From NCBI RefSeq assembly GCF_000400465.1, contig NW_008806290.1:217374-249373 (forward strand): a DNA stretch of 32,000 nt, written 5' to 3'. The notes beneath the pieces are model-generated. The model did not search any database. It had not been told where the DNA came from and saw nothing but the letters and a program-made list of their open reading frames with translations. This document shows, piece by piece, positions 1,041-32,000 of the stretch. A program made the translations under genes and the position numbers. Positions within the stretch are counted from its first letter, which is position 1. Each line of letters starts with the position of its first letter. Origin of the DNA: Wallemia ichthyophaga EXF-994 (taxonomy: Eukaryota > Fungi > Basidiomycota).

Positions 1041-3977
1041 ATGCCCCGGCTGTTTATCATACTTTCCTTCTGTCTCGTAGCATGTACGCTAGCTGTGTCT
1101 TCCTGGAGTGATTCCCGCGCGATCCCAAAAACTACTCAATACGCTTTGGAGTTGGCTGATGGCCACGCCCCACACGACTCTCTCTTCCAGCAGCTCCAGT
1201 CGCGCGATATTCCATACACACTCACGCAGTCATTCAACTCCCCTGATTTGTTTGTAGGCGCTGCGATACACTTGCAAAACTCGGACCACAGTTATCACCT
1301 CCCGTCCCTCGAATCTGTCAAGCATGTTTACCCAATCAACTCCTTTGACAGCCCAAATGCGTTTACAGAGGTGGTGAATACTGAACAGCGCAACTTGGCA
1401 GAGTCTTCCTTTACGCCCTCACTTTATCCACTCGTCTCAGGCACTCAGGCACAGCCTTCCTTCTACGCGGTCCAAACACTGTCTCAATCTGTCTTAGACA
1501 TGTCCGGCCTGGCATACGCCCACGCCCAAAACCTCACTGGTAGCGGGATCTTCATAGCCTTTGTAGACGACGGCGTCGACTATTCCCACCCGGCACTTGG
1601 CGGTTGTTTCGGTGCCGGTTGTCCCATCTCCCGCGGCTGGGATCTCGTCGGCGACGCGTACAACACCACCAACAACATCCTCAACCCAGGTCCGCTCCCA
1701 ATCACGACCTGCAAGTCACACGGCACATCTACGCTCGGTTTCGCTGCATCCCAACTGCGCGAGCTCCCCGGCGGTGCACCTAACGCCACGTACGGCATGT
1801 ACCGCATATTCGGCTGCCACGGCTCCTCAGGCGACGATGTGCTCGCGATGGGGCTTATTCGCGCGTACGAGGACGGCGCCGACATCATCAACGTCAGTGC
1901 CGGTGGCCCAGATGGGTGGACAACGTCTCTCCCCTCCGTCGTCGCCAGCCGTATAGTGCAGCGCGGCAGACATGTCGTCACTAGCGCCGGCAACTACGGC
2001 CAGCAGGGTCTCCTCTACTCTAACTCTCCCGCTGGCGGTATAGGTGTGACGCCCGTCGCTGCGCTCGACCTGCCCTACGTTCCCGTTCTCAATGCCTCCC
2101 TCACCGTCGCTGAACTGCCTGGCGAGCGCTTCCCATACATCCCCGAAGAGGTGTTCGGAGCAGGCAACGAGACGCGCAGGAGTTATGTCGTTGACGACGC
2201 ATGTGGGGGCGTAAGCGCCGCCGAAATGGGCAGCCTGGACGACCTGGCGCTCATTATCGACAGCTCCACCGATGAGTGTGACCTCTCCACCAAACTCGCC
2301 AATTTAAAGGTAGGTTGACGAGCAAGAGACGAGACTTGATTAACGCGCACTCCTCGCTCACCGCTCCACAGACAGCCAACGCATCGCTGGTGCTCATCAC
2401 AGACACACACTCCAACCTAACGCAAGCGCCGCACGTGGGCGGACTCGACACAGCGCTCCTGCGTACATCAGTCGCCTCAGCGATTCCGCATAATGGCACG
2501 CTCACGCTGCACTACACGCCGCAGCTGACGCACATCCCGCGCGGCGGGCTTGTCGCGCAGTACTCGAGCATGGGGCCGAGTGCCGATGGCTATGGGAAGC
2601 CAGCGGTGAGTGCGATAGGCAGCAACATCCCCACCCCGGCACCAAACAACAGCTACATGATTCAGAGTGGTACGTCGTTTAGCGCACCCGTCTACGCATC
2701 CCTGCTCGCGCTCCTTCTCGAGAAGCACGCTATAGATGATGTGCATCTCAGTCCGGAGCAAGCTCGCGCCATCATGCTCAACAGCGCCCAAAGTGTTCGG
2801 TTAGCTGTGGATGCAGATGACGGCGACGCGTTCACTGTGCTGCAGGGTAATGGACGCACGAGTATCGCTAGAGCACTCGCCGCGTCGGCTTACGCTACAC
2901 CTGATATAGTCAACCTCAACGATACGTGGGGTGCGGATAGTACGGGCGCGGGCGCTGGCGAGAAAAGCGCGCAGGTCCAGCTCGTCAATCTCTCACAAAA
3001 ACGCACGACTTACACCCTCGCTCACCACCCCGCCCTCACCGGCTACGTGCTCGAGGAGGGCACTATCCAGCCTAGCACCTATCTGCCTCCGTACTCAAAC
3101 GACACTGCGACTGTGAAAATGGCGCACAGTGTGTCTGTCGAGCCGCTCTCATCGGTAGATGTCGACATTGTTTTCACTCCGCCCCAGTGCTCCGATCATC
3201 GTCTGCCTATTTACAGCGGTTTCATCGAGTTCACAGACGCGCAGGATGTTAATAATACCCTGCACATTAGCTACAATGGTATAGCGGGCAATCTCTCCCA
3301 GATGACTATTCTCGATAACACAGACGATTTCTTCCAGCAGGGCTTCCCGGTGCCTTTCACGTACAGAAGCAGTGACAGGACCATGTTGAACGATACAAAC
3401 ACGCTCACCTTTTCCTTGGAGGATGATGATAGACCGGCACTCGTGTACAGACTCGCTGGCCCATCGCCATATTTGAGGATAGATCTCGTGGGCGCGGACA
3501 CGGAGCGCAATCGCACAACTAGCAGCATCACTATACCCGCACAAGAGAGCAATAACAATAGCAGAAGAACCAGTAGGAGCTTAGCTGATGGCGTGATGGG
3601 ATGGATGGCTGATCTTCTCGGAGGCACGAACATTAACACCAACACTAACACTCACGTTGACTCTGACGTGAAGAACAACAGCAGCACACTCACCATAAAC
3701 ACCCTAGGTATCTTGTACGAAGAGCTGGGCGTGTCCCGCAATGGCTTCAAGGGGTCCGGTCAGGGATCGTCTTTCTATCGTTACGACATGAACACTTTCG
3801 CAGATGGTGCACCCATCCCAACTGGCGAATACAAGTTCTTGCTCAGAGCGCTCAAAGTACACGGCGATGAACATGATAGTGCGGATTGTGGGTGGTATTG
3901 AATTTACGTGGATGCTCTACTTACAGTTTCACTCTCCAGACGAATCATGGCTGTCTGACGCGTTCAAGGTCATATAG
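1041..3977 (+). CDS. Secreted subtilisin-like serine protease (S8, pyrolysin/Vpr-like) with PA domain and C-terminal Fn3-like (DUF1034-type) region
   Basis: Signal peptide MPRLFIILSFCLVACTLAVS. Catalytic motifs are Asp (FVDDGVDYSHP), His (SHGTSTLG), oxyanion Asn (SAGNYG) and Ser (SGTSFSAP). The PA-like insert is DDACGG...LALII...KLANLK. Introns 2310-2371 and 3888-3939 join the two ORF-track pieces in frame and give the ending DYESWLSDAFKVI*. Confidence 0.92.
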
Positions 3978-4645: not shown

Positions 4646-7600
4646 CTACTCAAACGACTTCAAATACTCTATCCACCGTTTCCTATAGACGACTCCTTGG
4701 ACTAATGATGTGGTGATTAGCTTTTGCACCCTCACAACGCACCTCACTTACATCCACCAACTGAATCAACCACAAACACCTGCCTTGCTCCCAGCTTTGA
4801 GAAGTTGTCGTGCACAAGAGCCATTGGTGCTTCTGGTCTGACTACTAAAGGACTGAGATCACAGTACGCCGATAAGTCGTACGGGTTTGCAGATAGTGGT
4901 GCACCATCACACACAACAGTCGAAAACCTCTTAGGAGGATTCCTATTGTTGTTCGATTTACTCGTTGATTGAGTAAGTATGCTGTTCTGTAACGTGTCAA
5001 ATTGTGCGAATCTCACGCCTGCTGTTGGATTGTGCGAGAGTGAATCTAGAGCGTGCTCTAATTCATTCGCTGCTATATATCCAACCAGTCTTACCACCCC
5101 TTCGTCTTCAATTATCAACGGAAATCCTGAGTCAGATAATCCTTTCAAGACCAGGGTATCCAGTTTATCCAGTAACGTACACACTGAATGCTCAACGTCT
5201 ATCCTTATCACTGGTATCTTCTTTGTTGCGACGTCCGTGACTGAATCTTTGCCAAACTTGTATTCATGCTTTGCATCCAAATACGGAAGCCTGTTCATGT
5301 CAATTAACTGGTCGTATATGCCTTTTTGCTCAATAGTATCTGCTAACGTCTTGGCTATCAGAATTGATAGCATCGATGGCTGTTCGAATATCAGCAAGAC
5401 TAGCAGCAACAGTAACAAACCCAACCCACCACGGCATAATTTAGCGTACCCGTCAGCTCACAAACTATGACAACAAGTGATATTGTCATCCTCGTGACAC
5501 CAGATAAGGCGGAAGCTGCACCGATCAACGCGTAGATAGCCGTCAACATGCACTTCTCTTGGCCTACGCACTGATTGAATATTGCCAAGTCAGGCATCAC
5601 TTTCGACCAGTATTCGACAACTAATCCAACCATACGTCCGAAACAAGCACCGACAGCTAGTGTAGGTATGAATATCCCTGCTGGTAACTTCATTCCAAAT
5701 GTGACTACAGTCAGCACACCTTTAATAATCATAGCTAGTGAGATCGTCTTGAGTATACTCCAAGGTGCCTGTCCTTCTTTTGCACAGAGTGTCGCAAATA
5801 TACCTTTGAGTTTCTTACCAGACGTTTTGGATGGGCATTCACTTAACAACGTTGAGACTAATTCTGTACCTCCCATCTCAGTTAGTGGGTTGTATGATGA
5901 TATGACAGCTGTGATCAAGGTAATAAGAACAACTTCGACAATTGGATGTGACTTGACTGCCGTCCTCATTCTAACGTTTTTTCCCCACCAAATGTTAAAC
6001 TTTGAGAAATATGCACCGTAGATACCCCCTGCTATCGCTATAACAAAGAAGAAAGGCAATTCAAAGAACTTCCAATCCTGATCGTAAGTGACTTGAAACA
6101 AAACAGTCTTGCCCGTTCCGAAAGGATCCAAGAACTTCAAAGTAACTGCTGCTAAACTGGCGCAATAGAAAGCTCTCCACATAACTTTCGGTGGGAAATA
6201 AGTGCAGACTTCTTCCAACGCGAATAAAACTCCACCGATAGGTGCACCAAACGCAACACTCACACCTGCAGCACAAGCGGCCGAAATAAGCTCTCTTCTT
6301 TTAGCTTCATTTGTTTCAAATTTACGTATGAATCTTGAAGTTATGTTTCCAACACAAGCGGCTATCTGAACCATGGGACCTTCTTTTCCTAAATTCAACC
6401 CAGATGCTACACTGAAAGCTAACCCGATACATTTGCAGAATAGCGTGCAAACTCCCAAATACCCTCTTATCACAAAGCCGGATAGGATTGCTTTCATCTC
6501 TGGTATACCGCTTCCAGCAGCGAAGTACATAACTGGATAAGCTTGTACATCGCCTGATTGAGATTTCTCAGCTGTAGGTTTTGATTGTAGGTTATTTGTA
6601 TCATACTGAGCACCACCCGGGTCGCTGTGTGCGAGCAATTCTTCCTCAAGGTCGCTCGAAGAAGACTCATTACCCCCATCGCTGCTTGACTTTCTTGAAA
6701 TCGAGCGTGAATGTAATGAAGCTGTCTTATTTGCGTCATTACTGTAGAGATAATTGCTGATGGAGTCCCTGTGAGAACTTAAAGAAGGTTGCGGTACAAT
6801 TGAGGCAGGAGAAGGGGTAGAAGTTGATTGCCTGCGTCCAGAAGCGGCGTGATGATATGCGTCTAGGTGTGCCGTGCTCGAATTGTTCACCCAAGGAGCA
6901 TCGGATGCAGAAATGTAGACGGTGATGACGGATGATATAAAAGCAAATCCGACAGCTAGTGTCATATTAGCCAATCTTGCCGAGCGCTTTCCAAGTTTTT
7001 CCTCCCAACTTATCCAGTCTGGACAATCTGTCGACGTTGAGAAGAGTGAGATAACGTTGTTGTCTTGGTTTATAGTATAGTTGTTATCGCAGCAGAACTG
7101 CTTGGATTGGAGGTAAGATGATGAGCAATAGCCTGATTTAAAGCTGAACAGGAATGATTCCGTGCGTACTATTGAAAAAGCGATAATCTGTAGTGATGTC
7201 AGGTGATACCAGATGACGTCAGGGATGTTGAGATATGAAAACAATGATACGCACGGCTGTAACTATTCCTATTATAGTAACAGCAATCCAGCCTGTAAAA
7301 AAGGATGTGTGAGTAGTTGAGATAGAAATATCAAACCAAACAAACCCTGTGCTCTATCGAAAGACTTGTAAATGAATCCACGGATACCTTTCTTTCTAAG
7401 CAAGCGCCTAAGCCTTACGCCCTCCTTAACCTGTCCAATTTCAGCTGAAAATATCCAGAAAAACACAGCAAATCACCTTATCGTGGATGTAATCAATTGA
7501 AGTGTGAGTGTGAGCGTATGTGCGAACACCTTTGCCAGATTCGACCATATCATTCTCGTAAAAGTCATCGTATCCGCGCTTGTATTTGTTGGCTTGTCTG

Positions 7601-8044: not shown

Positions 8045-11000
8045 TCACTTAAGTAGCTTATTCAATGCCTTCTCCACGTTAAAGCCCGTCTGCTCAAGTG
8101 CTTCAATGGCTTGTGGTCTATCAAAACCCATATTGACCAACTGCTTTACCTGCTTTATATCATCATCCTCTGGTTCATTAAGGCGCGGCGGCAGATTTGG
8201 CTTGGCTGTGTTTTCTGCCTGCTCACTGCCTGGTGATTTGACGCTAAATGTCTCGCTAAAATCTACCAATGACGTCAGTCAATAGCTCAATAATAATTAA
8301 CTAAACACACCATCGAATGCTTTATTTGGAGCTGCCTTGTTAGATGTACCAGGTTGATCGAAATCAGCGACGAAATCAAAGGCCTCATCATTCTCAAAGT
8401 CATTCTGATCCCCATTAACGTTACCAGCCGCAATTTGAGCAGCAGGTAGATCACCAAATGAAGTATCAAACTCATCTTCATCTTTATCATCTTTCTCATT
8501 CTTATCAAATGCCCCACTTCCCATCATAGCTTCAAATGGATTTTTGTTGCTTGATTCTTTCTGTGCAGATGCAGATGTATCCGTTGGGAATGACGCGAAA
8601 GCATCATCGAATTCATCTTTGTTAGGATTGAGATTAGGTGGTTGTGCTGACAACTCTGGTAATTCCTCTGGTCCCTCATCGTCATCACTTGAGACATCAC
8701 CACGTTCCTTTCCTTTAGAGTGAGTGGTTGTGGTTGTGGTTGTAGGAGGTGGTGTGAAGCTGTCAAATGGTGATGAGACATCGTGCTTCTCAGCAGCAGG
8801 TGGTGGTACAATCTCAGCTGTTGACGCTGTTGGTGTGAAGCTATCAAATGGCGATGAGTCTGTAGCAGATGAATGCCCATACGCTCCCGTCGACGCAGCC
8901 GGTGCAAAGCTCTCATCGAAAGCTGCTCTAGAGTTGTCCATATTCGCCTTGTCTGACTTGCTATTGCTATCGAATCCCCTAAAAGCATCATCGAAATCAG
9001 AAACGGACACAGGTGCAGATTCATTTACGTTTATCTTGTCGCTTGCCTTCAAATTAGCATCATCATTAGCGTCCTCTGATTTGACTACTCTGGGCTCGTT
9101 TTCACCTTCTTCCACACCCATCTTGCTGAATTGATCTTGGAAAGGTGTCAAAGCAATTCCAGTGCCTTTGTTAGACTCAGACTCCACCTCAGCGGCAGCG
9201 TTCATGTCAGTCAAATGACTATCGCGAGTATCATTAGCATCATGAGCACCGTCATACTCATCGTGGCCACCTGCTCCAGCGAACGGATCCTCATCTACCA
9301 ATTCATCATCTTGAGCGCGTGTACCTTTGAATGCCTCCTCGTCTTTTATCGCGGTAGTCGCAGAAGCTGAGGGAGTGAGGCTATCGAATGGGTTTGTTGA
9401 TTTGGCTGATGCAGGGCTCAAGACGCTTGAGACGTCTTGGTGTTCATGATGAGCTTCGCTGTCTGGACTGATTGGGAGGGCGGTTGCAGCAGCCATATCA
9501 AGCGCCGGCGAGAGATTCTTGTCGTCTAGATTTTCTGCAGTTGACGTTGCATCTGTTGTATCTTTTACGTTTGCTGCGGTTGTTATATCGGACCTATCAG
9601 TTGCATCTGCTGCATGCTCATCCATAGCCACTGGGGTGTCCAAATCCTCAGCCTTAACGCTTGGATGAACTCTAGAGTCTTCAATCCCCTTGAGCGTGTC
9701 ATCCAACTCCTCATCACCAGGCGGAGGGAGAGCGACAGCCGGATCGACATTACTATACCTCTTGAGCTCATCTGCAGCCAAATCCCTATCACTTTCTGCC
9801 AATCTAAGCTGCTCCACTGCATCCTCATTCTCGCCATGAGCCACCACCTTCGTCTCTCTCAACTCGGACAAGCTCTGACGCATATCAGTCGTATGTTTAC
9901 TAATCTCCAACACCTTGGCTTTGACCACTCTAGCCTCCTCCTTCTCGCGCATGTAAGCCGTCTCAAGTTCAGCTCTCTCGACTTTCAGTGCGGAAACGTC
10001 ACTCTCTGCGCTGATGAGCTCATGGTCGAGGCGGCGGCGCTCGGCGGTAACTTCCGTCAGCTTAACCTGTAGGTCACTGACGAGGTGCGCTTCTGTGTCG
10101 TGCGCTTTATGCGCGTTGCTCAGTCGATGCTCTAGATTAAGGCGCTCTGCATCTCCCGCCTCCACAAGCCGCTCTAGCTCCGCACGTCGTGTTTGGTAGT
10201 CGGACAACGCGCGGTCCGTCGCGGATAGCTGCCCTCGCGCTGCTTCAGCCGCCACTGCGTCCTCGTGTAGCTTTGTCTGCTGTACATCGGAGTCGCCGAG
10301 GAGATCGTCAACGAGTGCTGTGCGTGGCTGCGCGTGTTCGCTGGGGTTTTCGAAAGGTGATCTGGCTTGTGATTGTGGTTGTGGGGTTGATTGTGGTTGT
10401 TGTTGTTGTGGCTGTGGCTGCTGCTGCTGCTGTTGTGCAGGCGAATTCTGCCAGCCAGTCACACCCTGTTGCAATGCATTTGGCTGCGAACCGCTAAACT
10501 GCGCAGAAAGACCAGTAGACTGCGCCGACAAGCCTGTACCCTGAGCAGACAAGCCTGTACCCTGAGCAGACAAGCCTGTGGGCTGGGTCGAGAGAGGAGG
10601 AGGAGCGCCGCTATGCTGAGGCTGCAAATCAGACTCATCGCCCATGAGATCAAAAAGGTCGTCTGTAGGTTTGCGTGGAGTTGTAGAAGCATTAGCAGCA
10701 GTACCTGGCATTCGCGACGATGCAGGTATTAATGAATCGGGTAAGGTGGGAGGGAGTGGATTGCCAGCGAGGCAGCGGTGGATGAGATGCATAGCAATTG
10801 CAAATTCGTCCTTGGAGAGACTGCCGGACTTTCTGACATCCGCTAAATCCCACACATTCGCTAAGACGTCTATGGGGAGACCTGATTTACTGAAAAAGTC
10901 GACAGCTTTGTCAGCTTCCAAGACGCCGTTTCCGGAGGGGTTGAGGGATTTGTAGAAACCGTCGTAGTTGCTCTTTTCTTGAGGGGATATTTCTGTGTTG

Positions 11001-11875
11001 AGTGGAGTGTGTGGAGTGTGTGGAGTGTTTGCTGGAGTATTTTGCGTAGGTAACTGAGGTGAGTCGGTGTCACCGACAGCAGCAAATCTAACCTGACGAC
11101 TTGGTGGAGGAGAACCAGGCTGAGTGCTGCCAGTTGATTGTCTCGGAATTGGAGAAGATAAGTTTCTACCCCCAGAAATCTGCTCGTAAAAGCCTTGTGG
11201 GAGTGTTTGAGGGAGACTTGCGATGGATTTGTTCATATAACACTGAATCAAGTGCATACCAATAATGAAATCAGTCAAATCAAGTGAACCGCGATTTTGA
11301 GTGTCAGCGAGGTTCCAAATCTGGCCAAGAACCTCAAAAGGCAGTTTGCTCTTTATGAAGATATCTCTTGCCTTATCGCCGCTGAGGAGACCGTTTGTTG
11401 GACCAGAACCAGCGAATATCTTGGTAAAGCGAGATTTTTCATCGATTTGAACTGGAGGAGGTGAGTTGGAGGGGTTTGAGTGTGCAATAGGGGAAGAAAC
11501 AGGTGATGAGATTGCAGGCGGAGGAGGAATACCATCGAATTGAGGAATAGGCCCAGCTGTGAGGGGAGTGAGTGGGTGTATCTACCACCAAAAACCACCA
11601 AACACACGCTTATCAACGAGATCATCGCTAACAGGCTGATTGTTCTGTACATGGCCAATCAGCCTCAAAGCCACGCTGAATCCAGGCTGATCGAGGAACC
11701 CGTTGTTGTTTCTATCTGAAAGTTGCCAGATTTGGCCCAGTTGTAAAGGGGCAAGACCAGAGTAGCTGAAGAACGCCACTGCTGATTCCCCAGATACGAT
11801 CCCATTTCCCTTCTCTGCGATGGAGTAGAAGTGTGCAAACGCATGCCTCTCTGATGGCGTCAGAGATAAGTTCAT
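8045..11875 (-). CDS. EDE1: Ede1/Eps15-like endocytic scaffold (3 EH domains, coiled coil, xPF motifs, C-terminal UBA)
   Basis: Three EH domains (LGQIWQLSD, LGQIWNLAD, LANVWDLAD), a Q/P-rich linker, a heptad-rich region, NPF/DPF/SPF motifs and a UBA domain (QLVNMGFDRPQAIEAL). Introns are 11557-11607 and 8263-8310. Confidence 0.93.
10490..10588 (-). repeat. 21-nt coding tandem repeat encoding LSTQPTG-LSAQGTG-LSAQGTG-LSAQSTG-LSAQFSG
   Basis: The unit gacaagcctgtaccctgagca is exact over 10527-10579 (about 2.5 copies) and is flanked by degenerate copies. Confidence 0.9.
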
Positions 11876-11960
11876 TGAATTTTTATTTAATTTAATTTAA
11901 TTAATTTTATTTCTTGTCTTGGTGGTTACGTTACAACAGATCTCCCGCTTAGTCCATGCC

Positions 11961-11968
11961 CACGTGAT
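11961..11968. promoter_or_regulatory. CACGTGAT E-box (Cbf1/bHLH-type) in the 100-nt EDE1/CENP-W divergent promoter
   Basis: CACGTGAT (ATCACGTG on the minus strand) matches RTCACRTG. An AT-rich tract at 11880-11912 lies in the same gap. Function is not demonstrated. Confidence 0.3.
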
Positions 11969-11975
11969 TTGAGCG

Positions 11976-12271
11976 ATGGCCCCACTCACGCTCACCAAAG
12001 CACTAAAAGACAAAAAACCAAAATCCCAAATCCACAAGCACTGCGATAAACTCTCTTACATCGCCCTATTATCCTTCTTGCAGCGCACTGCTATGGAGAC
12101 TAGAATCGTTTCCCAAGAAATCCACGGCCACGACAACAACAGGCTAATGACACGCAGGGAAGTTGGGAGAGCAGGCAGAGTGAGTTCCGTGTTTTCTTGC
12201 CTAGTTCCCCTCCAACTAACCCATACAAGCGCGTTTTGAGACGCGTAAATGGAAATCAAGAACAGCCATAA
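11976..12271 (+). CDS. CENP-W (Wip1)-like histone-fold kinetochore protein, 81 aa
   Basis: Exon 1 is 11976-12179, the intron is 12180-12229 (GTGAGT...CTAAC...AAG) and exon 2 is 12230-12271. The protein MAPLTLTKALKDKKPKSQIHKHCDKLSYIALLSFLQRTAMETRIVSQEIHGHDNNRLMTRREVGRAGRRVLRRVNGNQEQP follows the CENP-W pattern (KKP...D.L...L.F..R.A.E.R...V..A...L...G), aligned by eye from recall. Confidence 0.75.
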
Positions 12272-12312
12272 AATGAATAAATAATGTAAATCCATGTAAT
12301 TTATATAGGGTC

Positions 12313-15089
12313 TCATTTCCCTGCCATCTTCTTGAACTTGGCCTTGGCTTTCTGTTCACTCTTCTCTTCTGCCCTCTCATCACCCAATTGATCCACTTTC
12401 TTACGCATTTTATCCTCATATTTATCCAGCTCCTCTCTGCGTTCCTTCTGCTTATGCCCTGCGATGAACTTGGCATCTTTACGCAACTCCCGTATAGCTC
12501 CCTTTCTCTCCGCCTTAACCTCTGCCTTGAGTTTCGATGTTGCGGCTCGATCGTGATCTGGATCGTATCTCCTATCTGCGTTATAGTTCTCTTCAAACTT
12601 AGGTACGAGCGAGTTGATAGCGATTTGTTTGTGTTGCTGCATTCTCAATGGTCTGCGCGATTGTTTCGCAAATTTTACCTGATTGCCAAGCTGTTGTAGG
12701 GTGTTTTCTGTCTTATTCTGAGGGTATGTGAGCCTAACACTGACAATTCACTACCACTTTAACTCACTTTCACGCTTCCCAACATTCCCCTCTTCTCGAC
12801 CATCCTCAAACTCCCAACGAGTGGATCAAACGCTTCGATGAATCCATCAAGCGCACTCCACATTTGCGCTGCTTCGCGGGAAATCGTGAGTATCCTATCC
12901 ATCACGTCTACCTTGGCTTGTTGTTGGTCAGACTGTGAATTTGATTCGCTTTGAGTGAGCATGTCTCTGAGGTTCGTATCACTTGGCGTAACAACCGGGT
13001 TATTCATCGCCACTCCCCGCAATCGCCCTACATCAGGAACTGGATGCTGTCCCGGAACATTCATTTCCCTGCCAACTCCACCCAGAATAAGCACACTGCT
13101 AATCAGAAAGTTTACTACTTCCGGTATGAATCTCTTTGAGTAATGTTCATACTGCAAAGAAATGCCGCAAAGTACCAAACCTTTGATTATATCACTCAAA
13201 CTCCTTATGCGCGCCTGTGAGAGGTATTGTCCGATAAGCAGTTGTGCTGCAGATCCTACAGGATGACTGTAGTCGGAAGTTGACCACACAACACCAACTA
13301 CCCTAAGTATACTCAGTTCAGGTATCCCTGGCCACGTTTTGCTCTTATCGTTCGTCGCGCCGGCTGAGACACCCTTGTTGAAATTCCGCTCAAGTAGCTC
13401 GAGCTTCTGTTTGAATATATCGGCTGATGGGATTGGCAGTAGTTTTGTGAGCTGCTCAATATGACGAGAAATGGTCTCCATTATCTTCATGTCGACACTC
13501 GTTGACGCTGTGTATAGGAGGTGGTCGAGTAGAACGCCATTAAAGAGCGCCAACTTTGCTTTGTTTTCTTCACCTAATTCGGGGTGATAGAGTGTGCGTA
13601 TTCTCTCAATCATTATTGGGATTTGAGAAGGCTGGATGTTGTTAGATTCAACAATGTCCATGAATTCATCGTGATTCGATGGGCATTCAAAGGTGTATGG
13701 GAGGTTTGAGGAGGTATTTGAGGGTGTTTTTGATGACTTTTTCTTGCTACTAACTAGGTTCTCTACTGGTGCATCATTTTTCTGTGGCATATCACCGAGT
13801 TCGCCTTCATTTGATTCAGCGATGCTATCTTCAGAGTCGTCAGAGTCACCGTCTTGGTAATTCTCCCCCTCCTCATTGACATCCTCATGATCCTCATCAT
13901 CACTTTGCTCACTATCATCACCACCAAGACCCTTACCAATACCATAAGACTCGGCATTTTCCACTTGTTCATCATCTGAGGGGTTTTCATCGTCATGACT
14001 TTCATTCTCAGCCTCCTCTTCTTCTTCACGAGCACGTTGTCTTTTCGCAGCAAAACCACCGGTGGGATTGGTAACTTGAGAGTCATCCTCGCCTCTCATT
14101 CTAAGCAATCTTGCCTTCTCATTCTTTTCAAGTTCTTCTCTAGCTTCGAAAGCCACTTCAGCGTCAGATTTGAGTCGATCGGTAGGTTTTGCGCGTCTAT
14201 CGAAGGCCAATTGTCTAACGAATTGGTCGTAATCTTCGTTACCGCTCTTGTCTCCTTTGTAAGGGGCATTCCTTTCTCTATTCTTTCTCTCCTTCTCCTT
14301 GTCATTTTCTGCTGTACCATCAAAAAGCAGCCCTTTAATATCATCAAGATCAGCATCAACTTGTTCTCTAAGCGCATCGTCATCTTCACGCTGCTGCTGT
14401 CTTTCCATTTTGTGTGCTTTAGATTTAGTGATGAGTTCCTCCATGACCTCTGCCTTAGTTTTGCGTCGAGGGGGTGCATCTGGGTGAGAGTAATCGATGG
14501 GTTCTTCCTCCTCGCCGTCACCAAAGCCGCCGAAAGCGTCAAAACGAGTACTCTCGGCGGGGTCGTCATCATCGGCCAGACCAGCATTAGCAAAGTCATC
14601 GTTAAGAGCGAGGCTCTGGCCGTAATGAGTCAATTCATCATTATCTTCGAGATTGTAGTCGGCGTTGTTTCGAGTACGTTTGCCAGTATTGGCCTTCTCG
14701 GCCTGGTATCGCTCGAGCATCCTATCCTCCTCGTCGAGAGTTGGGTCCTGCTCGCCAAACCTCCTGTCTTTGAATTGGCCTGTTCTGTTTCGGTTCTGGA
14801 GTGCAGGCAGCAGTGCTTCTTTACGACTGTCTATACCGGCTTGCTTGGCTTTGGCGGGTGCACCGAGGCTGCCAATAACTTTTCTACCGCCCACATTATG
14901 CTTGAGGCGCTGCACTTGAGTATCGAACTTGTTAAATTTTGAGTGTATATCGCTGCTGACCTTCTTCTTCTTTTCTTTGTCGGAAGGAGTGGTGGATGTG
15001 CCTTCGAACTTTCTCTTGTTTGGCTGCTGGTGTTTATTTATCCCTGCATTCTGCACTGTTTGCTGGAGTTGCTTCAGTTGTGAAGGCAT
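12313..15089 (-). CDS. NOP14: Nucleolar protein Nop14 (SSU processome)
   Basis: Motifs FKDRRFGE, KTKAEVMEELITKSK, FDRRAKPTDRLKS, LPYTFECP and ERKGAIRELRKDAKFIA. One intron at 12718-12767. Confidence 0.95.
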
Positions 15090-15152: not shown

Positions 15153-16298
15153 CTAATCCTCCTCATCAGATTCTACACGCTTCTTATAAACCTTCTTCTC
15201 CTGCTCGATGCGGTTTTCTGCGTCTTCAAGTGAGTCAAGCGAGTGTTGACCGTCGTCGTCTTCTTCGTCGTCAATTCCTTCTTCCATAGCGCCGTCCTCT
15301 TCATCCTCCACGACGAATCCATCATCTTGGTCTTTTTCGTAGGTTCCTCGTGCACCTATACGCCTCGAGGCAGCTGCCCTACTAAGATCATCATCATCAC
15401 TACTCCAATCGAGGTTGTGTCCAGAAGCAATGGCTTCCTTCTTCGCGGCAGCTCTCTCCATTTTAGCTTTGTTACGCGCAGATTTCTTATCATCTTCCAT
15501 CTTTTTAAGGAGTTCCTTGTGTGGATCCTTGGATTCTGTTTCTTTATCGACCATTTTCATCTTTGCAGCCTTAAAGTGCTTGTCATTGACAGTCGACGCG
15601 TACTTCTTGTGTACATTTGAAGCCAGTGAAGGTGGTACAAAATTGAGCTGGGTGTCAATCACGCTATCGCCCATAACGACCTGATTCTTTTCGTGATGCA
15701 AGAAAGCGAATTGACGGGGATTTGTACGAGTTTCAGTGTCCGCGTCATGATTGAGGTTTATATCATACATCTCTTTTCCCACTTGCAAGCTCAAGCTGCC
15801 GTCAGACCAGCGAATGAATCTGCTGTTGGATTGTGCAATTGTGTGGCCATCCTCATCTTGATTCCACCTCCATCTGATAGTATTTGAAGTATTGGCGTTT
15901 GAAGGTAGATTCTTATCATCATCTTCAAACGTCTGCCTATCAAAACCAGCAGATTGTATGTTTAAAAAGTTTGGGATTCTGGCAAGTGAATTGTAGGTGG
16001 ATGTGCGTATAGGTGGGAGATTGTTTATATCCATCGTAGCTGTCCTGACTTGCTCAAGGATAACGCCATCATTAGGCATATCCTCTTCATTGTATTCCAA
16101 GGGGTTATTGGTAGGTTGTGTGTGAGCTTCATCCGTGTCATTGTTCTTGTCGTCATTCTTGTCGTCGTTGTCGTCGTTGTCGTCATTAAAACCATTAAAT
16201 TGATTCAAAACCCCAGAATTTCCGTGATTATCGACATTCTCACCACTCACACCACCTTCTCCAAATAAATCGTCCATCAAATCATCGTTATCAGACAT
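15153..16298 (-). CDS. LEO1: Paf1 complex subunit Leo1
   Basis: Intronless. Acidic N-terminus ([14 protein letters not shown]) and Leo1 domain motifs RIPNFL, NTIRWR and [18 protein letters not shown]. The first ATG is at 16298; the ORF-track start at 16304 is a GTG. Confidence 0.92.
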
Positions 16299-16334
16299 AT
16301 TCACCGGCTGTTGGTCGTTTCAATCCAACCAATC

Positions 16335-17786
16335 ATGTTCAATCCGAGTACGTCTTCCAGTTCAAATAAAAGGGTCTGTTACTTCCATGATAGCGATATT
16401 GGCCATTACCACTACGGTCCGAACCACCCCATGAAGCCTACTAGAGTAAATATGTGTCATAGCCTTGTTATGAATTATGGACTCTACAATAAAATGGAAA
16501 TCTACCGCGCTAAACCTGCGACGCGTAAGGAAATGACTCAGTTCCACACGGATGAGTATGTAGACTTCTTGAATAGAATTTCACCGGACAATATGGATTC
16601 CTATGCCAAAGAGCAAGCCAAGTGTGGGTGTTATCACTGTTTCTTCTTTGCTGTTTTAACACCACTGCCAGTCAACGTAGGCGATGATTGCCCTGTTTTC
16701 GATGGTCTGTTCGAGTATTGCTCCATTTCTGCAGGTGGTTCAATGGAGGGTGCCGCTCGACTCAGCCGCAACAAGACAGATATTGCCATTAACTGGGCTG
16801 GTGGTCTCCATCACGCTAAGAAAGCTGAAGCTTCCGGTTTCTGCTACATCAACGACATTGTTCTCGGGATCCTCGAACTCCTCCGCTACCACGACCGCGT
16901 CCTCTACATCGATATCGACATCCATCACGGCGATGGAGTCGAAGAGGCATTCTACACCACTGACCGTGTCATGACGGTATCCTTCCACAAATTCGGTGAA
17001 TATTTTCCAGGTACGGGCGACCTCAAAGATATAGGTTTGGGGAAGGGAAGGAAATATTCCTTGAACGTGCCTTTGCGAGACGGGATAACGGATAGCAACT
17101 ACCAGTCGATATTCGAGCCAGTAATCGAACACGTCATGTCGTGGTACAAGCCGAGTGCCGTGGTGCTCCAAAGCGGCTCCGACAGCTTAAGCGGGGACAA
17201 GCTGGGCTGTTTCAACTTGAGCATGCGCGGGCACGCCAACTGCGTGTCGTTTGTGAAGAAATTTAACCTCCCCCTCCTCCTACTCGGCGGGGGCGGGTAC
17301 ACGATCCGCAACGTCAGTCGCGCGTGGGCGTACGAGACGGGTATTGCCGTCGGGCAGGAACTCAGCCCTCATCTACCAATCACTGAGTACCACGACTACT
17401 TCGCCCCTTCACATACACTCGACGTACCCGCTTCCAACATGGAAGACCTCAATACTAAGCAGTACTTGTTTAATTTGAAAGCAGCCATTTTCGAGAACCT
17501 CCGCGATATAGACTTTACTCCTAGCGTTCAACTCCAGCCCGTACCACGTATGCTTCATGACGACGACGACGATCATGTCCTTGAAGACCGCGATGACCCC
17601 AACTCTAGACGCCCGCAGAGATTGTGGGATAGAAACGTGCAGAGGGACGACGAGTTTAGCGACAGCGACGGCGAGGGTGAGGGTGAGAATGCGAGCGGTA
17701 TTCGTGGTGTGCGTGCCAAACTTAACGGCGATTCTAACGCCAGACGGAATGAACAGAGCTATGCGAGTACACAGCCGGTTATATGA
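16335..17786 (+). CDS. RPD3: Class I histone deacetylase Rpd3/HDAC1
   Basis: Motifs [36 protein letters not shown] and GGGGY, followed by an acidic tail. The 48-nt intron 16624-16671 restores KFNVGDDCP. Confidence 0.96.
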
Positions 17787-17899: not shown

Positions 17900-18638
17900 T
17901 CAGCTGGCGTGTAAACCACTCCCACTCATACTCGCGCGTAACTGCATCTCTCTCTCGGCCAACTCAGCCAGATGAACCTGCAAGGCCAGTGAGCCGACCT
18001 GCAATTCGAGATTACTGCTGACGAGCGCAGACCAGTTCTTCTCGAGTGCATTGAGTCTATCGCCCAACTTGCCCTGTTCAGTCTTGCGCAATCTGTTGAT
18101 ATCGACAACCCTGTCGCGGGTGTGTTGCGAGTGAGTCTCCAACATCCGCGCGTCATTGTCGAGGGAATGATTAGAGACTTTCCACGCGTTTGCGCCGAGT
18201 GCAGTGAGTAATTCAAGATTGCTTGTTCGCTGTTGCTGGTATTCGGCGGTAATTGCGGCTGCGTTGAGCGACTGCTTCCATGGCGATTCCGCGGTGCTGC
18301 CGTCGCTGCCCTCAACATCCTCGGGCTCGGCCAGGGCATAACGGGAGCCGTCGAAGGCTGTGAGAGGGCTGCCGTGACCCACCCGCTCCAATTCCTGCGT
18401 GAGGAGGTGGCTAGAGGAGAGCGACGTAGATTCGTGTGGAGAAATATCGCTTGCTGGATTTGTATCGCCACTCCTCATTTCCTCAGCTACAAGACGTGCG
18501 GCGGCATCGCGCAGGTCTGGAGGTGGATAATGAGCGTGGAGTAGAGCGGGATACCAGCCACCCACGCTGATCGCTATCGATCTCCCTATCGTAGTAAGGC
18601 AGGCTGTCTAATTTGTAGTCTGCCTGCGTCGCTGACAT
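17900..18638 (-). CDS. SPF27: Pre-mRNA splicing factor Spf27/BCAS2 (Prp19 complex)
   Basis: Exon 1 encodes MSATQADYKLDSLPYYD. The intron is 18517-18565. Downstream motifs are LVAEEM, D.SRYAL, NLELL...GANAWKVSN and a C-terminal coiled coil. Confidence 0.88.
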
Positions 18639-20523: not shown

Positions 20524-21125
20524 TCATATGAGCTGCTCTAGCGTATGCAAATACCCTGCCCGCTGTTTATGCAATCCCTTCTGAAACCGCTTGATAGTGT
20601 AATTCTCGATCCGTGAGCGCATAACATGCACGCCGATATCCATCCACGAGGAGGTAGATTTGCCGATGTTACTTATAACAGTAGCGTGAGTGTAGTGTTC
20701 TGTCTGTGAGTTGTTGTTGCACCCGCTAAAGCGCGCATCCTCCACCAAGCGCATCAGCTTAACGTGATCGATGTTATACGACTTGCACTCGAGCGTCTCC
20801 CCCACGGCATCCACGCGACTCTCCTCCACCACCCAGCTCTCTGCCCGCTCGACGAGGTTCTTCGGCAGCCATTTGGGCAGCTGGCCGCGTTTGAGGATGA
20901 GGCGTGTGCTGTGCAGCGTGTTGTCGGGTGCCACTGCCCGCCTGAGCACATCCACACTGACGATATGGCCCGCGAATGGGTTTGGGTAGCGAAGGAAGAA
21001 GGCCCTGGCACACAAGTTGAACGGGAAGCTGCGGGGAGTGAGAGGGCGAACACACCTAAACACTAGAAACACTAGAAACACTAGACACACTCGTAGACGC
21101 TGCTTATCGAGAAGCTGTTCACCAT
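20524..21125 (-). CDS. UPS1: PRELI/MSF1-domain mitochondrial intermembrane-space lipid transfer protein, Ups1-like
   Basis: Spliced N-terminus MVNSFSISSVYD|FPFNLCARAFFLRYPNP (intron 21029-21090), then LHSTRLILKRGQLPKW and SWVVEES. Confidence 0.85.
21058..21084. repeat. Intronic 9-nt tandem repeat (aaacactag) x3
   Basis: Three exact copies lie inside the UPS1 intron, which at 62 nt is longer than most introns here. Confidence 0.85.
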
Positions 21126-21198
21126 CCTTCTCCTTCTTGGTTGCGGTCCAAGAGAAGCGAGCGTTGGTTACGTTCCACCAACACATATCACATATCGC

Positions 21199-22456
21199 AT
21201 GGCAGACAGCACCCCATCGAGACTGAGCAACGTCTTCAAGACTTTCATGCCTCCGCCTCGCACTGGTCTCGCAGACTCCAACTACACAGGCGTCGAGCTG
21301 CAGTGGAAGATGTTCGTCATCAGGCCTGCGCTGTTCAAGTGGGATCTGATTGGATTGGCGTTGGTATTGGTCTACATTCTCTGGTCATTTGTTGGTCGCC
21401 GCTGGAACAAGCGTATTGCGGATAGCTGGTGGGTAGCGTAGCGGGACACGTGCACAAACTCACACTTAATCAGGGCCAACCACTGGCGCGCAGTGATCAA
21501 CAAGCAAGTAGCCGTAGTCAATGTCTTCAAGCACTCGCCCACCTTGGCCGACGGCCCCACAGATTTCCTGACTTATGCGAGTGGCCGTCGCGGAATGGAG
21601 AGGCTGTACACGCACATACACACCCGCCCCCGCCACGACATCTTCCAGCAACTGTTCAACACGGCCTGGTCACTCGTAGACTTCAACGCCGACTCGGCAG
21701 ATAACGTCTCCATCACTGCCACACTCACACCCGGCGCGGGCGGCCAGGATGTCGGCTTCGTCTATGCCCTCGTGCGTAAGAGCAAAATGACAAATCTGCG
21801 CAAGAAACGTTTTGATTTGGGTCTCACCAGGACCGTCGATGGGGGTGAGGACTGGACGGATTTCGCTCCGATGGCCGAAGTACACGCGCTGGCTACGTCT
21901 TTCGCTAAACCGCACCTCACTGGCTTAGTGGAGACGGTGCGCGAGAAGGGCGATCTGCTCAATTGGCTCATCATCTCAGACCAGCCCGCTGCGAAACCCA
22001 CAAAGGGGCCACTCAACCCAGACGAGAAAGAGAGAGTGATCGAATTGAATTTGAGACTGCCGGAAGATGTCACCGCGCTTACTCCTTATATCATGCTCGT
22101 ATTTAACCTCATCGACGCCATTCACCTCCAGAAACTCTCCCTTAATGCTGATGTGAGTTGGTTGGTGTGTTCTAGCATTGCGCTTAATCTAACAACTCCA
22201 TCAGACTCTCCGCCGCTTACAAAAGAATCGCGTCGAGCTAGGCGCTTCTCTCGCTAAGGAATACGCTAAACAACTCGAAGATGAAGAAGAAGAGAGGACT
22301 GGCAAGTCGGCAGAAGAGCGCAAACGCATTGCCAAGAAAGCCATCGAGGATGCCAAGTATGAGAAAATGTCCAACGAAGATAGACGCAAATATGAAGAAA
22401 AAGAGCGCAAAAAGGTGGCTAGGAAGGCGCAACCCAAGCCAAAAATGAAGCGTTAG
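21199..22456 (+). CDS. CCDC47/DUF1682 ER membrane protein (PAT complex subunit-like)
   Basis: One transmembrane helix followed by GRRWNKRIA, FLTYASGRRG, and a charged C-terminal coiled coil ending RKAQPKPKMKR*. Introns are 21429-21473 and 22153-22204. Confidence 0.8.
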
Positions 22457-23581: not shown

Positions 23582-25538
23582 CTAAAAATCAAAACCCTGT
23601 CCTCTGAACTTACTCACTGCCGTTCCCGGTCTGGCAATGTTGGCTAGATCGTGTCTGTCGATCGCAAAGAGAGCGCGACGTAGAGTCTGCCACAAGCTGT
23701 GACTTTCGTTGATGCTGTTGTCATTAGTCGCCTGCTGCAGTGCAATAGCCCCGAGGAGATGCTCAGTAGCCTCCTTGTAGCAGCCGATATTAAGACAACT
23801 GACTCCGAGGTTATGAATTGCACGTGTAAAAGTGGGGCGCAGTTCCAAAGCCTTCTCATAAGCTTCGATGGCTGATTCGGAATTACCTCCGTTTGCCAAC
23901 GTAGCACCGAGTCTGTTCCATAGCAGCCAGTCATCAGGTCGGAGTGAGAGAGCCGTCTTGAAGCAATCCTCAGCCTGGTCGTAGTTGCTCGTAGCATAGC
24001 TGAGCACACCAAGCCCAACCTGTACATCAGCATCCAGAGTTAATTTGTCAGCACTACTGAACTGCGAGCGAGCGACGTCGAGGAAACAGTCTATCACACG
24101 CTGGTGCGTCGCCCATGGCCAAGTACTATTTGTCGAAGTGCCCGTATCTGGAGTGAGAGTGTGGGGATATTTCTTACTTAGCCACCTCTCAAGTGTCAGT
24201 GTAGCTGCATTGTCATCGCCTTCGTTGGTGTACGATATCGCCAATGGGATCATCGCTTCGATCTCGTTGGAATCCTCGCGTAGACACCGCTCAAGAGCGC
24301 GGATCGCTGCTTCTTCTTTCTCGTCCATGGCGTGTGTATAACCAAGCCACAGCCACGCTTTGGCGTTGTGAGGCGTCTGTTGAGCTGCAGCCTCGAACGC
24401 TAGCGCTGGCTCACTCAGCGGTCCACCCTCCCTAAGCAGCCTCTGTCCTTCGGCGAAAGGGTCAGAGGTGTCTAGCAGGTGATTCGCGGTCTCGAACTGG
24501 TACTCTTGCTGGGATACAGGAGCACTATTGTTCTGCTGCTCAATCAAATCATTTTCTATACTTTCCCGCGTACTATTCATTTCCATGTTAAATTCCCTCT
24601 CCCAACCTGCAAGATTCTTATTGAATTCATCTTCATGGTGTGCTTGAGTCTGGGTATTCCAGACATTCTCAAACTCTGATAAATAATTCTCATTCTTGTC
24701 AACATCCAACCCTTCATCGCGGAGAGCCTGTTTGAATTGCTGCTGTATGTCATCGTCCTTTGATGTGCTTTGCTGGTGTGTCTGCTGCGACGCCGCCTTG
24801 CTGGAAATATCCTCATAGAGCCTATCAAACTGCTGGTCCCACTTGGCTTGTTCTTCTTCCTGATTGATGGGGTTGATGGGTTGTGTATGCTGGCTGGTGT
24901 TGGTGCTTTGCAAGGAAGGTGAGATAGGCATATAAGGGGAGTAAGTGGAGTAAGGAGATGTGGTTGAATGTCCCAAGGAGCTGGGGCTAGCGGAATCACC
25001 GCGTGATCCACGTTGCTGCTGTTGCTGTTGTGCGAACTCGTCGTTCCAATTCGATTGATTCATATGTCGCTGATTGAATGAACGCTCGAGGACATCCCGC
25101 TGCTTATCGCGGTAGTTGAGAGTGCCAAATTCACTACTCCAAGCGGCTGCAGCCGGACCTGCTGACGGTCCCACCCTTCCAATTTCAGTCTTGATGGCTT
25201 CCATGCCAAAAGGTCCTGTGTGTTGCGCGATGGGGACGTTACCACGTAGCTGATCAGCTTCCTTGAAAGATGCCGATGATGTCGATGTTCTTGGGAACGC
25301 GGAAGCTGTCTGTGGGGCGTGAGAATAATGAGAGTAGTGTATTATTTGCTCACGGAAGATCCCAAGCCAGTTCTGTCCTACAAAATACCCAAATTAGCCT
25401 AAGAAACTTGCTAAGTACTTCCAAACACACCTTTACTGCCGATCTGTCACTATCTGCGTGCTTTATAGCGCTATTTAGTGGATTGTATCCATTCGTAGAG
25501 CATTCAGCTCCATTTCCAAACATTCCTCCAAAAGACAT
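23582..25538 (-). CDS. PEX5: Peroxisomal PTS1 receptor Pex5
   Basis: Spliced N-terminus MSFGGMFGNGAEC...NPL carries the conserved Cys. Introns are 25378-25430 and 25310-25353, flanking a 24-nt micro-exon at 25354-25377. WxxxF motifs (WSSEF, WNDEF, WDQQF, WEREF) and TPR repeats (LWNRLGATLANG, ALELRPTFTRAIHNLGVSC) are present. Confidence 0.96.
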
Positions 25539-27932: not shown

Positions 27933-30900
27933 ATGAGATCTGGCTCGAGAGATCTCAACGTCGATACGCACGTATCTGCCGCGGATACTGAGCAGTACGA
28001 GGATATAGACCAGCTCGGTGCGTAAACTGCGGCTGTGATGCTGACGCTAGCAGCGCTGACGAGTGTCCGCAGCCACACGTAAGGACTACGACGATTACAA
28101 CGATTACAAGGACTCGAGCGATACGCTGATCGGTGATAACGTCTTCGGAGCAACTGCAACTGCAACCGTTCGCACAACAGTTTCTGCAGACTCCAGCAAT
28201 CAGAGCCATCAGCGCCATCAGCGCCATCAGCGAAAGCCGGAATATTTCAGCTACCCGCCGTGGACAGTGCAGCCACCAACGCCGTCCACTTCTGCTCCTC
28301 CGCAGACACTCTTCAACAGCGACTTACAGCCTTTGCAGGACATGTACTCGTCTTGGGCCTCCTCACTATACACTCCCATCTCGATATCTGAGATAGAAAG
28401 CATTTTCCACGATATCTCACTCTACCTGGGCTTCCAACGTGATGCTTCTGGCAATGCTTTCGAAATGTTGATGCACCAATTAGACTCCCGCGCTTCCCGT
28501 ATGAGCGCTGATCAAGCACTACTCACTCTCCACGCTGATTACATCGGCGGTGAGCACGCTAACTTCAAAAGATGGTTCTTTGCTGCACAGCTCGACCTCG
28601 ACGATGCAATCGGTACAGAAAATAATCCAGGTATGGCTGTTCTCGGCGAAGCTGCACACGAGGTCAACGCTACTTTCGGCCAACGCTGTTATGCCTTCCT
28701 CACGCGAAATAGAACTAGACAGAAATCATTGCGTTCAGCTACAGAGCGCTGGCGCAAAGTTATGGAGCAAATGTCTAGTCGCGATAGAATCGTCCAAATG
28801 GCCGTCTTCTTGTTGTGTTGGACTGAGGCTGGTAATATTAGGTTCATGCCTGAATGTCTCTGCTACATATTCAAGTGTGCAAACGATCACTATAGAAGTC
28901 TTGAGCAGATACCGGAGCATGAAAGACGTATTCTTCCCCAAGGTTACTACCTCTGTCACATTATTCGCCCCTTATACCGCTACTATAGAGACCAAGTTTA
29001 CGAATTAGTCGATGGTAGATATCTAAAGCGTGAAAATGACCACGCTAAAACAATCGGATATGACGATATCAATCAGTTGTTTTGGTATCCGGAGGGTATC
29101 AACCGCATACATCTAGCAGATGGCACTCGGCTAGTCAACATACGTCCTGATCAACGTTACAGAGCTTTATCTAGTGTTAGATGGGACCAGCCATTTTTCA
29201 AGTCGTTCAAGGAGAAGCGCACTTTTGCCCATCTTCTAGTTAACTACAATCGGATTTGGATTGCACATGTTGCCGTCTATTGGTTCTTTACCGCATATAA
29301 TGCCCATGAAGTATACAAGAGAGATTGGGAATCCCAGCCTGCAAGGCCGATGCAGTTATCAGCATCAGCTCTTGGCGGCGCTGTCGCCTCTTTGATCATG
29401 ATAATAGGCGCATTTGCAGAGTTCAGTTTCCTCCCTGTTAGTTGGAATCATTTTTCAACGTTATTCAGAAAACTATTACTCTTCTCAATCACGCTCGTTT
29501 TATGCATTGGTCCCACTTACTACATTGCAACCTACGAAAGAGACACGCCTTTCTCACTGAATTTGGCAAGAGGTCAATTAGCTTTCTCGATATTTATTAC
29601 TGCATTCTACACTACCGTGCCATCGGGGAGAATACTGGGCGATAGAGTTAGTTCGAGGGCAAGAAAGTATGTTGCATCACAAACATTCACTGCTTCATAT
29701 CCGAAACTCGACAGTAGCGGGAGATACACTTCAATTGTTTTGTGGATCTTGGTGTTTTCTTGCAAATACGTTGAAAGCTACTGCTATCTCTCGTTGTCTT
29801 CCAAAGATCCAATGGCTGCTTTAATGAACATTAGCGTGCAAAACTGTTCAGATGCTCTTGTCGGAGAGTTCTTCTGTACACATCACGCAAAATTCACCCT
29901 AGTTATCATGATAATGATGGACCTGGTGCTTTTCTTTTTAGATACGTATCTTTGGTATGTCATCTGGAGCACCTTCATCTCTGTTTTGAGGTCTTTTGTT
30001 CTTGGTCTGTCCATTTGGACACCTTGGAAAGATCTTTACAGACGTATACCAAGCATGATCTACTCTAAGCTACTCGTACACAACGGACTTCCAATGAAAC
30101 CAAAGATTTTAGCAGCTCAAGTTTGGAATACGATTGTGCTGTCTATGTACAATGATCATCTGTTGTCCATCGTGAGTTACATACCAAACCATACTCTTCT
30201 CTAATAAGACTTCAAGGACCACGTCCAGAGGCTCATTTATACGGAGATTCAGTCAAAGGAGGATGGCAAGCGAACGTTTGAAAGCCCGCCGTTTTTCATC
30301 GATTTTGATCAGAAATATGGTACACGTACCGAATTGTTACCATCCAACGCTGAAGCTGAGCGTAGAATATCGTTCTTTGCAAGGTCACTGGCCATCAAGA
30401 TGCCCGAATCGATCCCAGTACCTGAGATGCCGTGCTTTACAGTATTAGTTCCTCATTATTCAGAGAAGATGTTGCTGTCATTGCGTGAAATTATCCGCGA
30501 AGAAGATGAGAGCACAAGAGTCAGTTTGTTAGAGTATTTGAAGCAGTTACACCCAGTCGAATGGTCGCACTTTATTCGTGATACACAGACTATCGCTGAA
30601 GAGTCGGGGATGTACCGCACCCCCAGTGCGACCCCTAGTGCCTCACCTTTGATGACAAATCTCGCAACAAAACCAATGACTACCAACGCGACTCCTAGTG
30701 CATCGCCATCAATGACAAATCTTGCAACACCGTCCATGACTCCTGCTGCAACGCCACTCTTATCACCCTCGATCAATATCTCAGGTAGGACCTCTCCAGG
30801 TGGATTCGGCGCACCAAGGACACCACTGCCTGAAACACTGCACAGATCCTTCAGCGATACCTTCGCTAGCTACAACAATATGAAAGCACAGCTACCCAAC

Positions 30901-32000
30901 TACACACTGCGTACACGTATATGGGCATCTGTTAGATCACAAACTCTTTACAGAACAATATCGGGCTTCATGAACTATAAAAAGGCTATCAAACTTCTAT
31001 ATCATGTCGAAACACCCGATTTAGTTGATAGGTTGCTCGACGAGCGCAACCATTCATCAGTATCAAGTGAAGATAGTCAGAAGTTTGGTGTTAAACACGG
31101 CGAAACATCTGACTGCGACGAAATCGATGAGGATACTGATCATATGGTGGAAAGAGCATTAGATAGCATGGCGACAAGGAAGTTCAAGTTTTTAGTGTCG
31201 ATGCAACGTTACTCAAAATTCAACGCCGAGGAAAGGGAGAATGTGGAGATATTGCTGAAAACTTTCCCGGATTTACAAATCGCGTATATTGAAGAAATAG
31301 TAACACCTGATGAAGATGATATCAGTGAGGACTTCGATGAGGTCAGATACTACTCGGTGTTGATTGACGGTCATTGCGACAAGCTGCCAAATGGCACTCG
31401 CAGACCAAAGATGAGAATTGAGCTGCCAGGTAATCCAATCCTCGGTGATGGTAAATCTGATAATCAGAACCATGCACTTATTTTTTATCGTGGCGAATAT
31501 CTCCAGCTTATCGATGCTAATCAGGTGCGTATTTACTTCAGTTCCCATAATTCCGCCAACTCACACTCCATTAGGACAATTATCTCGAGGAGTGCCTCAA
31601 AATTCGTAACGTGATTGCAGAATTTGAATCATACCAGACGTCTAAACAGTCGCCATACTCTGATTGGGGACAGCACGACTTCTATAAGAAGTCTCCAGTC
31701 GCTATTGTCGGTGCTCGTGAATATATCTTCTCAGAGAACGTCGGTATACTAGGAGATATCGCTGCTGGTAAGGAGCAAACATTCGGCACTATGGCTGCTA
31801 GAGCCTTATCACACATCGGGGGTAAGCTTCACTATGGTCACCCTGATTTTCTCAACGCAATCTTCATGACGACCAGAGGTGGTGTTGCGAAAGCACAAAA
31901 GGGTCTACATTTGAACGAGGATATCTTTGGTGGTATGACGGCTTTCAATAGAGGTGGTCGCATCAAGCATGCTGAGTATTACCAATGTGGTAAAGGTCGT
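27933..32000 (+). CDS. FKS1: 1,3-beta-glucan synthase (FKS/GT48), divergent, 3' end beyond the window
   Basis: Motifs [67 protein letters not shown] and LHLNEDI. Introns are 28018-28072, 30172-30216 and 31525-31574. The family is certain; FKS1 orthology versus a paralog is not. Confidence 0.95.
30628..30756 (+). repeat. 60-nt (20-aa) degenerate tandem repeat inside FKS: [20 protein letters not shown] / [20 protein letters not shown] / ATP
   Basis: Units start at 30628, 30688 and 30748. The copies differ at many synonymous third positions. Confidence 0.85.

Follow-up and report, generated by a model that had tools for sequence, protein, structure and literature searches.

In the present study we found that a small two-exon gene of the basidiomycete fungus Wallemia ichthyophaga EXF-994, lying at positions 11976-12271 of the 32,000-nt stretch of DNA that was analysed (hereafter, the window), encodes a basic protein of 81 amino acids that is very probably the W. 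ichthyophaga orthologue of CENP-W (Wip1 in yeast), the histone-fold partner of the kinetochore protein CENP-T. The gene itself is real, and its two-exon model is already public, so that this CENP-W is the rediscovery of a catalogued gene rather than the "hidden" gene that the initial annotation had announced. Indeed, the exact 81-aa product is annotated in EXF-994 and in other W. ichthyophaga assemblies, on 18 NCBI contigs altogether (protein EOQ99630.1), and the gene span on the four contigs shown is 296 nt, which corresponds to 11976-12271 in the window. The product is publicly named "uncharacterized protein J056_001715", with no functional name in the annotations.

The first exon (11976..12179, plus strand; 204 nt) was defined from the sequence and the list of open reading frames. 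It starts at the ATG at 11976 and comprises 68 codons (MAPLTLTK...GRAGR), which cover the fold from helix α1 through loop 1, the long helix α2 and loop 2 to halfway along helix α3. This exon is followed in the sequence by a 50-nt phase-0 intron (12180..12229, plus strand), which possesses a GTGAGT donor, a CTAAC branch-site motif (12216-12220) and an AG acceptor (12228-12229). The second exon (12230..12271, plus strand; RVLRRVNGNQEQP) comprises 13 codons, and then the TAA stop codon (12269-12271). The spliced product is strongly basic, with a pI of 10.95 and 17 lysines and arginines vs 7 aspartates and glutamates. The sequence reads as the initial annotation had described it, with two exons for a basic, histone-fold-sized protein.

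The following lines of evidence support the assignment of this protein to the CENP-W family. First, the sole Pfam match of the 81-aa protein, up to an E-value of 10, was PF15510 (CENP-W; E 6.3e-5, amino acids 6-72). Its score of 23.6 bits falls just below the cutoff of 25, a value which is the threshold of the curators, not a biological feature, and the other Wallemia homologues behaved similarly (21-24.7 bits, with likewise no other family). Second, the phmmer comparison of the window protein with the PDB retrieved CENP-W chains only, though weakly, while a profile built from three Wallemia sequences retrieved chicken CENP-W (3b0c_W, E 1.5e-5) and human CENP-W (E 0.012), with no chain other than CENP-W up to an E-value of 10. 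Third, a profile of 15 basidiomycete sequences, which contained no animal sequence, again matched only CENP-W in the PDB, i.e., the chicken (E 8.5e-12) and human (E 2.3e-4; residues 18-86, full length) proteins. Fourth, the exhaustive search of 1.84 billion representatives with a profile retrieved more small proteins of the MAP…YPRSTLR…FLQRLA.E.R type, and the search of 5.8 billion proteins with the enlarged profile retrieved many Microbotryomycetes "hypothetical proteins", including one from Leucosporidium creatinivorum, and reached an annotated turtle "centromere protein W" (E 1.7e-7). Fifth, the direct comparison with this turtle CENP-W gave a probability of 98.1% (E 7.8e-14) by hhalign with the basidiomycete profile, and an identity of 38% across 39 residues (E 3e-6) by BLASTP with the window protein. 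A 415-aa protein (P0007) that matched the Wallemia profile with an E-value of 1e-9 was left out. This tandem-repeat protein contains six copies of a 25-residue stretch matching α2 (…LCVTNMLQRCTKQQNIVGQHIY… repeated), and it is probably a chance match amplified by the repeats.

The AlphaFold2 model, computed from an alignment of 21 sequences (pLDDT 84; pTM 0.65), comprises three helices (residues 6-13, 23-50 and 60-74), and it predicts a bare α1-L1-α2-L2-α3 histone fold with neither tails nor extra helices. The best six Foldseek matches of this model in the PDB were all CENP-W chains (7qoo_W, 7r5s_W, 3b0c_W, 3b0d_C, 3vh5_W and 7xho_W), with probabilities of 0.99-1.00, TM scores of 0.64-0.71 and rmsd values of 2.1-2.7 Å over 70-71 columns. 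The corresponding E-values (0.03-0.17) are weak in absolute terms, as is usual for a fold of about 70 residues, for which it is the ranking that counts. Thus the Pfam match, the profile searches and the structural comparison all place CENP-W first, as the initial annotation had surmised from an alignment with the human protein.

Knowing that histone folds all look alike, it is worth considering whether the Wallemia protein might belong to another histone-fold family (H2B-like, NF-YB/Dpb4/Dr1-type or CENP-X/CENP-S) and merely resemble CENP-W. The H2B chains do come next after CENP-W in the Foldseek ranking. Moreover, a Rhodotorula homologue (P0008) shows a marginal match to CBFD_NFYB_HMF (PF00808, E 0.059) and bears a UniRef name starting with "Transcription factor CBF/". 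However, the H2B chains superimpose far less well than CENP-W (TM about 0.5 and rmsd mostly 6-8 Å, vs 0.64-0.71 and 2.1-2.7 Å), the predicted structure has no helix beyond α3, and CENP-W was the only family matched by the window protein in Pfam (up to E 10) and by the profiles in the PDB. In these searches there was no match to the core histone family PF00125 (up to E 10), nor to PF00808 (NF-YB/Dpb4/Dr1), CENP-S or CENP-X. We therefore regard membership of another histone-fold family as very unlikely, and we retain the assignment to CENP-W.

Similarly to the Wallemia protein, the vertebrate CENP-W proteins (chicken 3B0C/3VH5 and human 7QOO/7R5S, chain W) are short (76-88 aa) and consist of a bare three-helix histone fold. 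They share with the Wallemia protein the motifs TL.K..K..KP (α1/L1) and D.L......L.FL.R.A.E.R (α2), as well as the basic end of α3, even though their identity to it over the structural alignments is just 23-27%. Loop 2 is longer in the Wallemia protein than in vertebrate CENP-W, and it is rich in histidine and asparagine (HGHDNNRL). In the budding yeast Saccharomyces cerevisiae, Wip1 is reportedly the small histone-fold partner of Cnn1/CENP-T (Schleiffer et al. 2012), and we take it to be the functional equivalent of the Wallemia protein. Wip1 gave no sequence match in the PDB searches, where the vertebrate CENP-W chains alone appeared. In these sequence comparisons, the Wallemia protein is more similar to the CENP-W of animals than to the Wip1 of budding yeast.

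Among basidiomycetes, the CENP-W homologues and the window protein have a MAP...STL N-terminus in common, and in their genes a phase-0 intron precedes the final ~8-13 codons. This last intron falls in the same alignment column in Wallemia hederae (GRGGR|RALRRV), Leucosporidium creatinivorum (RKAKK|AVLKGL) and Rhodotorula paludigena (QRASK|RVLERG). The identity to the window protein is 73% for the W. hederae orthologue, 59% for the Wallemia mellicola orthologue and 30-36% for the Microbotryomycetes proteins. An N-terminal PKPSYPR insert is present in W. mellicola and in Microbotryomycetes, and it is absent from W. ichthyophaga and W. hederae. Another phase-0 intron, located after the DKL/DKI codon, is kept by W. 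hederae (positions 3079-3122 of contig L003) and W. mellicola (contig L002) as the first intron of the gene, and it seems to have been lost in W. ichthyophaga alone, where the equivalent point is 12053|12054. This difference would thus correspond to the loss or gain of an intron within the genus Wallemia.

The position of the last intron matters for the protein, in that the exon junction (12179/12230) falls between residues 68 and 69, i.e., within helix α3 of the AlphaFold2 model. The second exon completes α3, and in the alignments its residues fall opposite the AAAKVILKKSRG end of turtle CENP-W and the matching C-terminus of chicken CENP-W. The splice is needed for the C-terminal helix. As the initial annotation had pointed out, the mechanically predicted open reading frame (11976-12239; 87 aa) enters the intron and ends with ...GRAGRVSSVFSCLVPLQLTHTSAF, without the real C-terminus. 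Since the junction lies inside α3, this unspliced frame would truncate the histone fold.

Could the intron nevertheless be retained, and the real product be the unspliced 87-aa protein? The unspliced frame is open for 87 codons, and several homologue models in the databases are unspliced (P0005 and P0018). However, the read-through tails are unrelated across species (VSSVFSCLVPLQ... in W. ichthyophaga vs VSTPGSVAYD in W. mellicola), whereas the peptide specified by the second exon, RR[VA][LI]RR[VI], is kept in the three Wallemia species. Furthermore, the splice signals are canonical, and the second exon finishes α3 and aligns to the C-terminus of CENP-W. Finally, the homologous site appears spliced in a cDNA-like sequence, the 5.4-kb Logan contig SRR23314750_10605, which is ~88-96% identical to the genomic DNA of W. 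mellicola CBS 633.66 and lacks seven segments of 40-52 nt present in this DNA. In this contig the exons of the CENP-W homologue are joined as …GGTAGA|CGCGTA…, which is homologous to 12179|12230 in the window. Because introns are missing from the contig, we infer that SRR23314750 derives from RNA, in which case the contig supports the splice at the level of transcripts for a sister species, not for W. ichthyophaga itself. Together, these data make the retention of the intron hardly credible, and they argue for the spliced 81-aa product.

The same Logan contig spans three adjacent genes on both strands, encoding the EH-domain protein, CENP-W and Nop14. It looks like the transcriptome assembly of another Wallemia species or strain, in which the overlapping transcripts of neighbouring genes were merged.

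Beyond the two unspliced models mentioned above, other database models of the homologues apparently read through introns, namely P0012 in Wallemia (as P0005 and P0018) and P0009, P0020, P0021 and P0022, some of which are from Microbotryomycetes. The read-through concerns the last intron (yielding a tail starting from V…, e.g., GRAGR-VSTPGSVAYD), the first intron (P0012) or both (P0018), and the read-through of the last intron leads to the loss of the end of helix α3. From these sequences, the small CENP-W gene appears to be systematically mis-annotated in the relatives of W. ichthyophaga, but not in W. ichthyophaga itself, so that the earlier opinion that the gene is easily missed by annotation holds for the relatives only. 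The value of the gene is mostly one of curation. The J056_001715, E3P9x_... and WALSEDRAFT_68357 entries of GenBank/UniProt could take the name CENP-W, and the read-through models of W. mellicola strains and Microbotryomycetes, from which half of α3 is gone, need correction.

The comparison with W. hederae also revealed a coding signal. Over the 80 aligned codons, the numbers of differences at the first, second and third positions are 21, 13 and 40, respectively, and 28 of the 49 changed codons are synonymous. The excess of third-position differences indicates a coding sequence under purifying selection. The idea that the frame is a chance ORF and not a functional gene, which could be suggested by its very short length, its location squeezed into the 437 nt that separate the EH-domain gene from Nop14 and its want of a functional name in every annotation, is already effectively refuted by its orthologues in the same syntenic slot of three Wallemia species, its coding substitution pattern, its significant homology to CENP-W and its expression and splicing in a relative (the Logan contig, of presumed RNA origin).

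What could such a protein do in Wallemia? CENP-W is the obligate and integral histone-fold partner of CENP-T, and when it is lost, CENP-T disappears from kinetochores and the levels of the outer kinetochore fall (review PMC9252888). CENP-T binds the KMN network through its N-terminus and centromeric chromatin through its C-terminus (PMC7794384). By homology with the other members of the family, we propose that Wallemia CENP-W would use its three-helix fold to pair with the histone fold at the C-terminus of CENP-T. The resulting CENP-T/CENP-W dimer would bind centromeric DNA and stabilise CENP-T at the inner kinetochore, and the disordered N-terminus of CENP-T would then recruit the Ndc80 complex. 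The size, basic charge and predicted fold of the Wallemia protein fit such a role as the partner of CENP-T.

Our finding is consistent with a published survey of kinetochore proteins across Basidiomycota (Sridhar et al. 2021, Nat Commun 12:146). In Supplementary Data 1 of this survey, homologues are given for both CENP-T (I4Y8Y2 in W. mellicola and R9AAJ0 in W. ichthyophaga EXF-994) and CENP-W (I4YEJ2 and R9AHT8, respectively), so that the retention of CENP-T and CENP-W by this lineage, which the initial annotation had put forward, was correct and already published. W. ichthyophaga yielded a single CENP-W-like family, so R9AHT8 is very likely the window protein. A full-text literature search found no mention of R9AHT8, J056_001715, I4YEJ2 or WALSEDRAFT_68357. 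The basidiomycetes with a listed CENP-W homologue also include Leucosporidium creatinivorum and Ustilago maydis (Sridhar et al. 2021).

As regards CENP-T, we used a histone-fold profile combining the chicken sequence, identical to the PDB chain 3b0c_T over 109 residues, and the human sequence from the same comparison. Among the 120 of 186 matches listed, this profile found only vertebrate CENP-T, in a search whose word index does not extend to fungi for such queries, and no CENP-T_C match occurred among the large ORFs of the 32,000-nt window. The presence of CENP-T in Wallemia therefore rests on the list of Sridhar et al. 2021.

In the same survey, Wallemia is also listed with CENP-A, CENP-C, CENP-N and CENP-I, and with no CENP-S, CENP-X, CENP-L or CENP-H, while the bridgin table has no Wallemia entry; the loss of CCAN subunits in Agaricomycotina was placed at the divergence of the Wallemiales from the other orders (Sridhar et al. 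2021). One may tentatively imagine that the inner kinetochore of Wallemia is reduced, with a CENP-T/CENP-W dimer operating without CENP-S/CENP-X, CENP-H and CENP-L, although we consider this rather doubtful. If true, Wallemia would be a living intermediate between a complete CCAN and the kinetochore of Cryptococcus, which has CENP-C only (plus bridgin). The absence of CENP-S and CENP-X could equally be a failure of detection, because small histone-fold proteins are easily overlooked. The loss of CCAN subunits in Cryptococcus, invoked as a background by the initial annotation, is not directly applicable here, since the organism belongs to the Wallemiomycetes and is neither Cryptococcus nor a close relative. 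According to the published picture, the CENP-T/CENP-W linker was lost in Cryptococcus and in most other basidiomycetes (Sridhar et al. 2021). As a CENP-W gene, the gene of the window supports the view that this linker was kept by the Wallemiales, the earliest branch of the Agaricomycotina, and Wallemia offers a possible model of how CENP-T/CENP-W functions in a reduced CCAN.

The CENP-W gene is tightly packed between its neighbours. An AT-rich spacer of 100 nt (11876..11975) separates its ATG from the divergent gene of the EH-domain protein, the first-exon ORF of which (11582-11875, minus strand; EH Pfam match) begins at the ATG at 11875. This spacer is presumably a promoter region shared by the two genes. 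On the other side, a gap of 41 nt (12272..12312) separates the stop codon of the CENP-W gene from that of the convergent Nop14 gene, the last exon of which occupies 12313-12648 on the minus strand (from the ORF list and a Nop14 Pfam match). The 3' ends of the CENP-W and Nop14 transcripts probably overlap. The gene order EH-domain protein, CENP-W, Nop14 and Leo1 also occurs in W. mellicola, and Nop14 follows CENP-W in W. hederae.

The content of the whole window (1-32000) is otherwise ordinary fungal housekeeping, and its large ORFs included no further kinetochore gene. Upstream of the CENP-W gene lie the genes of a mitochondrial-type ribosomal protein S11 (538-999), a subtilase (1041-3901), a CLC channel (5400-7244, minus strand) and the EH-domain protein (8297-11875, minus strand). 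Downstream are those of Nop14 (12313-15089, minus strand), Leo1 (15153-16304, minus strand), a histone deacetylase (16311-17786), BCAS2 (17900-18565, minus strand), PRELI (20524-21186, minus strand), CCDC47 (21493-22257), a TPR protein (23582-25204, minus strand) and the FKS1 glucan synthase (28063-31614).

In several W. ichthyophaga strain assemblies (L004, L006 and L007), the gene upstream of CENP-W is annotated as encoding a product of 2205-2282 aa, and in L005 the upstream product unites an EH, a UBA and a Voltage_CLC domain. Separate blocks of ORFs, about 1 kb apart, encode the CLC channel and the Ede1-like EH-domain protein in the window, and the fused EH/UBA/Voltage_CLC model looks like an annotation merge.
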